This document shows, piece by piece, positions 14,699-31,504 of a stretch of DNA of 32,000 bases (positions are counted from its first letter, which is position 1; every line of letters begins with the position of its first letter). A model generated the notes under the pieces. That model made no database searches, had not been told where the DNA came from, and saw nothing but the letters and a program-made list of their open reading frames with translations. This DNA comes from Wallemia ichthyophaga EXF-994. Taxonomy: Eukaryota; Fungi; Basidiomycota. A program made the position numbers and the translations under genes. Where the stretch lies: positions 300,001 to 332,000 of the forward strand of contig NW_008806287.1 in the NCBI RefSeq assembly GCF_000400465.1. The letters run 5' to 3'.

Positions 14699-15045
14699 AA
14701 TGATCGTACAAGTTGAAGAAACTTGAAGAAGCTTTTTGATCGTTTGGCGTATATCCTCGTAAATACTTCGCTTTATATCATTTATTGTGCAATACATATC
14801 ACTCTCCAACCACCCGCTCCTCTTCCTCTATCACTCCGTCTGTTTTGCTAACCACTTGCGTCATCCGCCGTGGCCCAATGCCTTCATTTTCTCGTAATGC
14901 TAAATGTATAAACTTTTAAAAGCCTTATAGGGATTACGCTTTGCCTTAATTACTCCATGATAAAATAAAGGCAAAAAGTCTTAATCAGATTTTGCTATTG
15001 AAGAATTGCGCTTTAGGTGAACAGTATTAACTGTTACAATTAGAA

Positions 15046-15053
15046 TTATATAT
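15046..15053 (+). promoter_or_regulatory. TATA-like element upstream of the permuted tRNA
   Basis: TTATATAT, 32 nt before the first base of the tRNA 3' half. Confidence 0.55.
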
Positions 15054-15085
15054 CAGTTCGAAATAATTCAATGGGAGTAGCTGAT

Positions 15086-15161
15086 ATCGAAAGGTTGCAG
15101 GTTCGAGCCCTGCGTCGGTCACCACGGCCGGCTGGCTCAATGGTAGAGTATTCGACTACGG
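15086..15161 (+). tRNA. Circularly permuted tRNA-Arg(ACG): 3' half (15086-15121), CCAC linker, 5' half (15126-15161)
   Basis: The halves reassemble into a full 72-nt cloverleaf. Acceptor GGCCGGC/GTCGGTC + A73; D-arm GCTC-AATGGTA-GAGT; anticodon stem TTCGA/TCGAA with loop CT-ACG-G|A; variable AGGTT; T-arm GCAGG-TTCGAGC-CCTGC. Confidence 0.9.
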
Positions 15162-15168
15162 CTAAAAC

Positions 15169-15178
15169 TTTTGTTTTT
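15169..15178 (+). terminator. Pol III oligo-T terminator
   Basis: TTTTGTTTTT starting 8 nt after G37 of the tRNA 5' half. Confidence 0.7.
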
Positions 15179-15603
15179 ACTGTCCATTTTACAGCTCTAC
15201 CGGAATTATCTTTACAGACGCGTTATTATGGGCTAATATTTATATATTTTTGAGTTGCGCGTCTTCAACTAAACGCTTCTTTTCTTTTCGTTGATTTCAT
15301 GTATAAATAAGCTCTTACGCGTGCGCAAGTGTAAGCTAGACGCGCAAAAAGTTAAACAGATAGCAACAAAGACTTAGTGCTAAAACGTGGATCTATTTTT
15401 ATATGCATGTTCCTGCTTTGAATTGGTGACATGCACAATTTATGTCGTAGGAGCAGCGAACAATGCGCAATGCGCAACGCGTTAGTGTAGAATAATTAAC
15501 AAAAAACCTTGATACACTATTTTAAAAAGAGATAAATTTTGACTTTGTTTTCATGAACTGATTTCACCACTGTCTTCTTGAATAACATCAACGATAAACC
15601 AAA

Positions 15604-31391: not shown

Positions 31392-31504
31392 CGTCAGCTG
31401 TAGGATTCGAACCTACGCACTACAAGAGTACTTGATAGTATGCTTTGGAAGAACTCCACTTATGAAATTCTAATCAAGCGCCTTAACCACTCGGCCAAAC
31501 TGAC
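31392..31504 (-). tRNA. tRNA-Ser(AGA) with 31-nt intron (31437-31467)
   Basis: Acceptor GTCAGTT/AGCTGAC + G73; D-loop GAGTGGTTAA; anticodon stem CTTGA/TCAAG with loop TT-AGA-A|A; long variable arm; GTAGG-TTCGAAT-CCTAC. Confidence 0.93.

Follow-up and report, generated by a model that had tools for sequence, protein, structure and literature searches.

Can a nuclear tRNA gene in which the 3′ half precedes the 5′ half be a working gene of a fungus? This question is raised by a locus in a stretch of 32,000 nucleotides (nt) of the genome of the salt-loving fungus Wallemia ichthyophaga EXF-994 (contig NW_008806287.1, positions 300,001 to 332,000; hereafter the window), where a circularly permuted tRNA-Arg(ACG) gene had been predicted from the letters of the DNA. 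The comparisons described below make it very probable, as far as sequence can tell, that the locus belongs to a functional, circularly permuted type II (37/38) family of nuclear tRNA-Arg(ACG) genes, which has at least two copies in W. ichthyophaga and is genus-wide.

A tRNA-Arg(ACG) gene with exchanged halves

The locus was read in both orders. In the native order, ARAGORN returned no tRNA, and a search of the window with Rfam at the gathering threshold reported tRNA-Ser(AGA) as the only tRNA, the permuted locus being missed by the tRNA model. When the halves were swapped (5′ + 3′), ARAGORN called a 72-nt tRNA-Arg(acg) with an acceptor stem of 7 base pairs (bp), two of them G-U, a D stem of 4 bp, and anticodon and T stems of 5 bp each. 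The consensus residues U8, A14, G18G19, U33, G37 (R37), T54T55C56, and A58 are all present, as is the A15:U48 pair. The two halves lie exactly where the original prediction had placed them (Table 1), and its description of a cloverleaf with all stems paired and the invariant bases intact was confirmed, as was its expectation that standard finders would miss the gene. The break is located between positions 37 and 38, which, again as predicted, is also the site of the 31-nt intron of tRNA-Ser(AGA) in the window. Two features had been overlooked: the window linker has CCA directly after the discriminator A73, and a TTTTT run begins 13 nt past G37. It had also been claimed that no complementary half lies past either end. 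This holds for intact halves, as the trailers are unlike the 3′ half (p > 0.4) and the leader contains only a D-loop-like relic of 12–14 nt.

A permutation-aware scan was performed on ~140 kb of DNA. For this, 23,030 self-concatenated segments of 110 nt were passed through ARAGORN with introns allowed. Junction-spanning tRNA calls were obtained at the permuted Arg loci and at one other place, a conventional tRNA-Ser; the latter call is explained by a segment starting on the tRNA-Ser, the second copy of which contains the whole gene. Since the junction-spanning calls are otherwise confined to the permuted Arg loci, the arrangement is not a chance pattern.

The arrangement is shared by six copies in three species

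The related genomes, in which the original prediction had proposed to look for the same order of halves, gave six copies with the same break point: W. ichthyophaga, W. hederae, and W. mellicola have one each at two loci, which are syntenic. In all three species, the copy at locus 1 is upstream of the HMG-CoA synthase gene, and that at locus 2 is downstream of a hydrophobin gene. All six copies are permuted at 37/38, and ARAGORN called the swapped sequence as a 72-nt tRNA-Arg(acg) in every one of them. One of the locus 2 contigs, L008, was the single match obtained when 241 million JGI metagenome records were scanned with a 30-mer from the 3′ end of the tRNA, which matches conventional and permuted genes alike; this match was again permuted. 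The contig is from W. mellicola: the protein encoded by its diacylglycerol (DAG) kinase open reading frame (ORF) is 99% identical to a named protein, and the contig itself is 99.5% identical to L017. The six copies were taken from independent NCBI assemblies and one JGI metagenome contig. Misassembly, which had been considered a possible refutation of the permuted gene, is ruled out, since at least eight assemblies, made independently, show the same permuted arrangement.

The 72 coding bases are 93–100% identical across species, and at both loci all 72 are the same in W. ichthyophaga and W. mellicola. In contrast, the 200-nt flanks on each side are 49–57% identical between species, compared with 49–53% for shuffled sequence. 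The linkers between the halves are 1–4 nt long, and neither their length nor the CCA is conserved, CCA following A73 directly in three of the six.

Neither L002 (the outgroup lineage in HMG-CoA synthase) nor the tricalbin relatives L009–L015 were informative for the two loci, as there was no synteny or the contigs ended short of the site; the W. hederae DAG-kinase contig L018 was not syntenic either. Contigs L002 and L010–L015 come from ENA/Logan metagenome assemblies and represent a Wallemia-like lineage with an HMG-CoA synthase 85–87% identical to that of all three species, to which it is an outgroup; many metagenome assemblies contain it. In the ~100 kb examined from this lineage, no permuted gene was found, but synteny differs there.

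Compensatory changes connect the two halves

The first W. hederae copy has four differences, which form two compensatory pairs, C3:G70 to A3:U70 and U28:A42 to C28:G42, and each pair has one partner in either half. The second copy of this species carries the same two compensatory pairs together with T16G at a variable position of the D loop. In the native-order alignment, 83 of 83 pair cells were standard, with two pairs changed on both sides and none on one side only. As a control, the partners were slid by 1–3 columns, and pairing dropped to 25–45%. The chance that four random sites make two complete pairs is 2e-4, even before it is required that pairing be kept.

Because the compensatory pairs bridge the halves, and because pairing is complete, unlike in the slid controls, the alignment argues for an RNA that is selected for pairing between its two halves. 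Selection of the halves to pair as RNA cannot be explained by a pseudogene, a DNA-level binding site for a protein, or an assembly error.

Signals for splicing and termination in the flanks

The splicing endonuclease of eukaryotes is known to need an anticodon–intron pair beside a bulged 3′ splice site. In the permuted precursor, the counterpart of an intron's 3′ part would be the 5′ leader. The aligned leaders have G(−3) as their sole invariant base (six of six copies). Positions −5 to −3 are CUG, CCG, UCG, and CCG in the four copies that were folded and are complementary to C35-G36-G37; the second W. hederae copy has UCG as well, and the fold of the second W. ichthyophaga copy shows the same C35-G36-G37 pairing. 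Intron segments are usually complementary to the anticodon region. The splice-site context of the predicted precursors fits a relaxed eukaryal pattern consisting of a base pair at −3 and complementarity to the anticodon.

In the four precursors folded both ways, a cloverleaf-compatible fold lies within 0.4 kcal/mol of the minimum free energy, and the leader and trailer lengthen the anticodon arm. The stabilization brought by leader–trailer pairing was compared with that of shuffled flanks and gave z = −5.0 and −5.3 in W. mellicola, −2.8 and −2.4 in W. hederae, and −2.6 (window copy) and −1.3 in W. ichthyophaga. It thus reaches −2.4 to −5.3 in five of the six copies, with a helix of different sequence in each. 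When leaders and trailers were swapped among four copies, the matched combination was better than the cross-species swaps in three of the four, the window copy having the weakest helix.

All six trailers contain a run of five to seven T residues, the start of which lies 13–20 nt past G37 (+13 to +20); the background chance of a run of at least five T residues is 2–6% per 25 nt. None of the six linkers (CCAC, CTAC, or A) contains a T-run. Judged by their sequences, such features, conserved within flanks that cannot be aligned, make sense only for the expression of a permuted precursor. The claim that this is a genuine gene, unlike decayed debris, is strengthened by the 93–100% identity of the gene set against its saturated flanks, by the compensatory pairs, and by the conserved processing and termination signals.

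Table 1. Features of the window and of related Wallemia contigs (c, complement)
Feature	Location	Strand	Remarks
3′ half, tRNA-Arg(ACG) positions 38–73 (A38–A73)	15086–15121	+	Sequence reading; ATCGAAAGGTTGCAGGTTCGAGCCCTGCGTCGGTCA; anticodon-stem 3′ strand, variable loop, T arm, acceptor 3′ strand, discriminator A73
B box	15100–15110	+	GGTTCGAGCCC; inside 3′ half
Linker (intervening sequence) CCAC	15122–15125	+	4 nt; closes acceptor stem
5′ half, positions 1–37 (G1–G37)	15126–15161	+	GGCCGGCTGGCTCAATGGTAGAGTATTCGACTACGG; acceptor 5′ strand, D arm, anticodon-stem 5′ strand, C32 U33 A34 C35 G36 G37
A box	15133–15143	+	In D arm of 5′ half
Anticodon ACG	15158–15160	+	
Predicted 5′ leader of permuted precursor	15041–15085	+	Counterpart of an intron's 3′ part
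TATATAT	15047–15053 (−39 to −33)	+	Within leader of window copy
D-loop/A-box-like stretch	15068–15079	+	TCAATGGGAGTA; within leader
AGCUG	15079–15083	+	Leader; can pair with C35-G36-G37 and trailer +1,+2 (folds)
G(−3) relative to 3′ splice site	15083	+	Candidate partner of C32 (anticodon–intron pair) or C35
Trailer with TTTTT run	15162–15178	+	CTAAAACTTTTG, then TTTTT at 15174–15178; Pol III-type terminator after 5′ half
Permuted gene, locus 1, W. mellicola	L001:9232–9304		Linker A
Permuted gene, locus 1, W. hederae	L007:9216–9291		Linker CCAC
Permuted gene, locus 1, W. ichthyophaga	Window copy, 15086–15161		Linker CCAC
Permuted gene, locus 2, W. ichthyophaga	L016:c19804–19729		Linker CTAC
Permuted gene, locus 2, W. 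hederae	L019:c12505–12430		Linker CCAC
Permuted gene, locus 2, W. mellicola	L008 (JGI metagenome contig) and L017		Linker A
tRNA-Ser(AGA)	Window 31392–31504	−	31-nt intron at 37/38; Rfam tRNA match
tRNA-Arg(TCT), conventional	L017:353–462	+	38-nt intron; also at L019:c20124–20034, cut by contig end
tRNA-Val(AAC)	L019:14339–14442	+	W. hederae; 31-nt intron at 37/38
237-nt repeat	L017:1–237	+	
237-nt repeat	L017:15359–15594	−	
237-nt repeat	L008:20–256		

Proposed maturation and its alternatives

[quoted passage not shown] The precursor is predicted to fold into a cloverleaf in which the acceptor stem is closed by the linker and the anticodon arm is extended by the pairing of leader and trailer. 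The tRNA splicing endonuclease would then cut after G37 and before A38, and a tRNA ligase would join G37 to A38. As the halves are already joined via the linker, the product would be a circle of 73–76 nt. RNase P would open it 5′ of G1, and the 1–4 linker bases would be trimmed from the 3′ end, with CCA being added or, where the linker is CCAC, retained. Deamination of A34 to inosine would yield a tRNA reading CGU, CGC, and CGA. We infer the polymerase, the promoter, the enzymes, the circular intermediate, and the order of steps, having modelled the pathway on the algal one, which has been established experimentally for algal permuted tRNAs (PMC3978253).

Several observations weigh against a functional gene family matured in this manner. 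The leader–trailer helix of W. ichthyophaga is short in both copies (see the z values above), and a strict archaeal-type hBHBh′ motif is not formed, since positions 32–35 and −6 to −3 make only two of four pairs in the window copy. The linkers of 1–4 nt are below any range reported in eukaryotes (5–74 nt) and would form a very tight loop for RNase P and 3′-end processing. The B box lies upstream of the A box, and no TATA or other upstream element is conserved at a fixed position among the six copies. Finally, the W. hederae paralogues show concerted evolution, in which a conventional copy elsewhere could also take part.

This last point leads to the alternative that stands best, namely that the permuted copies are functional but redundant, with conventional tRNA-Arg(ACG) genes supplying most of the tRNA and gene conversion maintaining the likeness. 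We regard it as possible, although we lean clearly against it. Demand for the tRNA, which speaks for the functional gene family, can be read from the codons: in eukaryotes, the CGT, CGC, and CGA codons are read by tRNA-Arg(ICG), and these three make up 94 of the 170 Arg codons (55%) in eight ORFs of the window. The original prediction raised the possibility that the window copy is essential. The permuted gene is not unique, as each of the three genomes has at least two permuted copies. Paralogues do homogenize, the two W. hederae copies sharing the same compensatory pairs. W. ichthyophaga has been reported to contain 11.55 kb of tRNA genes, which makes multi-copy tRNA families plausible (PMC3849046). 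On the other hand, all six Arg-ACG sequences found are permuted, as is the sole 30-mer match among the JGI records, and conversion from conventional genes cannot account for the conserved terminator, the G at −3, or the leader–trailer helices. Neither the ~300 kb of Wallemia DNA examined nor the scan of JGI records showed a conventional Arg-ACG gene; the scan is weak evidence, since the metagenome did not contain the other permuted locus of the species. One conventionally ordered match in L017 was rejected as Arg(ACG): it is tRNA-Arg(TCT) with a 38-nt intron, a different isoacceptor.

A second alternative keeps the functional permuted gene and dispenses with the circular intermediate. RNase P and 3′-end processing would act first, in the nucleus, and leave two base-paired pieces, which the endonuclease and ligase would join at 37/38 in the manner of a split tRNA. 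In budding yeast, end maturation and CCA addition do precede the cytoplasmic splicing, and the acceptor stem of the permuted precursor is a normal 7-bp RNase P substrate with a "leader" of 1–4 nt. The sequence fixes no order of steps and is as compatible with this route as with the circle. We nevertheless hold it to be rather unlikely, since a circular intermediate has been detected in every permuted system examined experimentally, in both red and green algae (PMC3978253), and the two-piece complex would need to survive export.

The locus in its native order was also recognized by an independent model. At a permissive threshold, it matched, together with its flanks (15064–15181), the Rfam family YrlA (RF02553) at 36.6 bits, and two other copies did so at 40.8 and 29.4 bits. 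YrlA is a bacterial Y-RNA-like tRNA mimic, which its discoverers liken to a circularly permuted tRNA whose acceptor stem is closed by a loop (bioRxiv 10.1101/312249); because of this resemblance, we take the match as recognition of the permuted-tRNA topology, with no family membership implied. In both RNAs, an end-to-end stem in place of the anticodon stem is followed by the T arm, the loop-closed acceptor stem, and the D arm, and the YrlA of M. smegmatis is cut by RNase P and receives CCA (bioRxiv 10.1101/312249). It could be argued that the Wallemia RNA is itself a stable Y-RNA-like mimic with a closed acceptor stem that is never made into a decoding tRNA: the match spans the full model (E ~1e-6 to 1e-4 for the ~280-nt stretches searched), and Y RNAs are Pol III transcripts with an end-to-end stem and a U-run. 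We consider this very improbable. The scores of 29–41 bits are far below the gathering score of 69, and membership in YrlA was rejected as a topological resemblance. YrlA is bacterial, is encoded beside Rsr (Ro60), and has no anticodon loop, whereas C32-U33-A34-C35-G36-G37/A38 and A73 are intact and invariant in Wallemia. The terminal stem, which is the Ro60 site in Y RNAs and a conserved Ro-binding helix in YrlA, is not conserved in sequence in Wallemia, with W. ichthyophaga having almost none of it; the permuted genes lie beside aminotransferase and HMG-CoA synthase genes or beside a hydrophobin gene, and not beside a Ro60 gene.

That the locus has no function is scarcely credible, whether it is taken for a tRNA pseudogene that was rearranged or retro-copied, for a TFIIIC site with a B box only, or for an assembly artefact. 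In favour of such a relic, the CCA that follows A73 in the window resembled what a reverse-transcribed mature tRNA would leave behind, and TFIIIC could bind to a lone B box. Against it, the independent assemblies all show the identical arrangement, the gene is conserved within saturated flanks, the compensatory changes require an RNA with paired halves, and CCA is missing from three of the six linkers.

The promoter question

A B box ahead of the A box has been described as unsuitable for TFIIIC (PMC3978253). The permuted genes thus raise the mechanistic question of how a gene with inverted A and B boxes is transcribed in an organism expected to use TFIIIC. A stretch resembling the D loop and A box was found in three of the five leaders tested, including both from W. 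ichthyophaga, at about the normal distance from the B box (TCAATGGGAGTA compared with the gene's own segment TCAATGGTAGAGTA; p = 0.004–0.02). In the window, the comparison of the leader with its own D-loop segment gave p = 0.02. An upstream 5′ half may have left this stretch behind, and it could serve as a surrogate A box; we offer both ideas only as a lead. As a universal promoter element it was rejected, its position not being conserved across the six leaders and the stretch being absent from two of the five tested. An upstream TATA element was rejected as well, since TATATAT is present only in the window copy among the six.

An A/C-rich block (ACACAAAC, CAACAACC, CACATAAGCTCAACAG) was also noted ~45–60 nt upstream of A38 in five of the six copies, the window copy being the exception. 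The block is semi-conserved and resembles TTTCAACAACCC at −25 to −14 of the conventional Arg(TCT) gene; it is possibly a transcription start region.

Origin of the permuted copies

The similarity between paralogues extends beyond the gene: over 424 nt in W. hederae (76%), 126 nt in W. ichthyophaga (94%), and 80 nt in W. mellicola (97.5%). The 126 nt include the leader of the window copy, whose paralogue is the leader of the second W. ichthyophaga copy. Because the similarity reaches past the gene, the sequences indicate that the gene was already permuted when a segmental duplication copied it, that this happened before the species diverged, and that gene conversion followed.

The intron-like features of the leader fit both published models for the origin of permuted tRNA genes (PMC3978253). 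In one of these, "model C" (PMC3978253), an end-matured pre-tRNA is circularized and then reverse transcribed, and no footprint of it has been reported. CCA after A73, as found in half of our linkers, is what "model C" predicts, and it may stem from a CCA-tailed, intron-containing pre-tRNA that was ligated at its acceptor ends, reverse transcribed, and integrated. In this case, the linker with CCA may be the first clue to the origin of permuted tRNA genes. It should be noted that the linker is CCAC or CTAC in the ichthyophaga–hederae clade and A in W. mellicola, and these states do not fix the ancestral one.

Two other schemes were rejected. One is a retro-copy, for which reverse transcriptase would have stopped at m1G37 and switched to the CCA 3′ end with one untemplated base; the linkers A and CTAC and the strong selection speak against it for the present locus, and it survives as a possible origin only. 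The other is a tandem pair broken by deletion: no trailer has a relic of a 3′ half, and the leaders offer only the short D-loop-like stretch described above.

A joint reading can be put together in which all tRNA-Arg(ACG) genes of Wallemia are permuted, TFIIIC copes by using the leader relic as an A box, and CCAC is the fossil of an RNA-mediated origin. Taken as a whole it is tentative, and we would sooner doubt it than accept it. If all of these genes are indeed permuted, the decoding of over half of the Arg codons in the fungus would hinge on an RNA that is cut, made into a circle, and opened again.

Comparison with known permuted and intron-containing tRNAs

Permuted tRNA genes of algae have reportedly been described, as have permuted tRNAs of the archaeon Thermofilum pendens. 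A review from 2014 listed 34 permuted tRNA genes, which belonged to algae, a nucleomorph, or Thermofilum and did not include Arg(ACG) (PMC3978253), and a review from 2026 restricts the eukaryotic ones to unicellular algae (PMC13578239). The literature check for a fungal precedent, which the original prediction had called for, gave no report of a permuted fungal tRNA in the searchable literature, subscription-only papers lying outside this search.

The closest counterparts are the type II genes of Ostreococcus, Micromonas, Cyanidioschyzon merolae, and the Bigelowiella natans nucleomorph (PMC3978253). As in Wallemia, their 3′ half comes first on the same strand and the junction is at 37/38; a short intervening sequence lies at the acceptor ends, the linker has no terminator while a T-stretch follows the 5′ half, the leader and trailer pair beside the junction (for Wallemia, in the predicted folds), and the un-permuted sequence has all eukaryotic tRNA consensus features. 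The Wallemia genes differ in their host, a basidiomycete and thus an opisthokont. They also differ in the length of the linker (1–4 nt against 5–74 nt in the eukaryotic cases) and in having no strict bulge–helix–bulge. An upstream TATA-like element, which in algae, including C. merolae, lies within about 50 bp, is not conserved in Wallemia. CCA starts half of the Wallemia linkers, whereas C. merolae does not encode CCA (PMC3978253).

The permuted tRNA-iMet and tRNA-Tyr of T. pendens likewise have a very short intervening sequence (1 and 7 nt) with CCA encoded adjacent to it. These genes are archaeal, however, with the junction at 59/60 (type IV), additional introns, and archaeal promoters and endonuclease. 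Ordinary intron-containing tRNAs of fungi, represented by tRNA-Ser(AGA) of the window and tRNA-Arg(TCT) of W. mellicola, share with the permuted genes the 37/38 splice position, a base at −3 of the intron that pairs with position 32, and a stretch of intron that is complementary to the anticodon region. Unlike theirs, the permuted "intron" is not closed, its ends being the 5′ leader and the 3′ trailer.

By the searchable literature, this would be the first permuted tRNA gene family of a fungus or any opisthokont, with very short linkers, CCA in some of them, and no TATA element as its distinctive traits. A conserved fungal family would mean that the ordinary splicing and end-processing machinery of opisthokonts can sustain a permuted architecture; it would also imply independent origins and bring the phenomenon into a kingdom with excellent genetics. 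Because both ARAGORN and the Rfam tRNA model miss permuted genes, Arg-ACG may be recorded in error as missing from the tRNA inventories of Wallemia and possibly of other fungi.

Genomic context and neighbouring tRNA genes

The gene products of the window include an AA9 lytic polysaccharide monooxygenase, an aminotransferase, HMG-CoA synthase, NPL4, an SPX protein, and PRMT5. Over 11 kb, the window is 99.4–99.9% identical to four W. ichthyophaga assemblies. As placed by the offset from contig L003, the permuted gene lies in a divergent intergenic region of ~0.9 kb between the aminotransferase (−) and HMG-CoA synthase (+) genes and shares the strand of HMG-CoA synthase, which it precedes by ~440 nt. 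The HMG-CoA synthase exon of the window is 92% identical to the W. mellicola protein, and the HMG-CoA synthases of the three species diverge by 4–7%. The gene order around locus 1 varies: NPL4 follows HMG-CoA synthase in W. ichthyophaga and W. hederae, unlike in W. mellicola, where it lies on the far side of the aminotransferase. In the latter species, the permuted gene is preceded by ~3.1 kb without called genes or long ORFs (L001:6096–9231).

Wallemia DNA yielded three conventionally ordered tRNA genes, those for Ser(AGA), Arg(TCT), and Val(AAC). Each has an intron at 37/38, which suggests that Wallemia tRNA genes are intron-rich. In the intron of tRNA-Ser(AGA), A(−3) faces U32, and the UUCU inside it is complementary to the anticodon and A37; no obvious terminator of at least four T residues is found within 20 nt downstream of this gene. 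The D and T arms of tRNA-Arg(TCT) are closely like those of Arg(ACG). Directly upstream of it, at L017:338–352, stands the A-box-like AGTGGCGCAACGGGC, which may be a relic of another tRNA. A W. hederae gene model (L018:4840–10326) joins an arginyl-tRNA synthetase domain (tRNA-synt_1d, DALR_1) to a P-type cation ATPase and is probably two merged genes.

A 237-nt repeat with termini resembling long terminal repeats (TGTCAG...CTGACA) occurs in copies that are 96–98% identical, and contigs break within it. Two of the copies stop short of a tRNA gene, one 115 nt upstream of conventional tRNA-Arg(TCT) and the other 135 nt upstream of A38 of the second permuted Arg(ACG) copy; both point away from their tRNA gene. 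The repeat beside the permuted copy is followed by a Retrotran_gag_2 ORF (L017:16153–16852). With these two instances, the repeat looks like a retroelement that targets genes transcribed by Pol III; if so, the element would treat the permuted gene as one of them.

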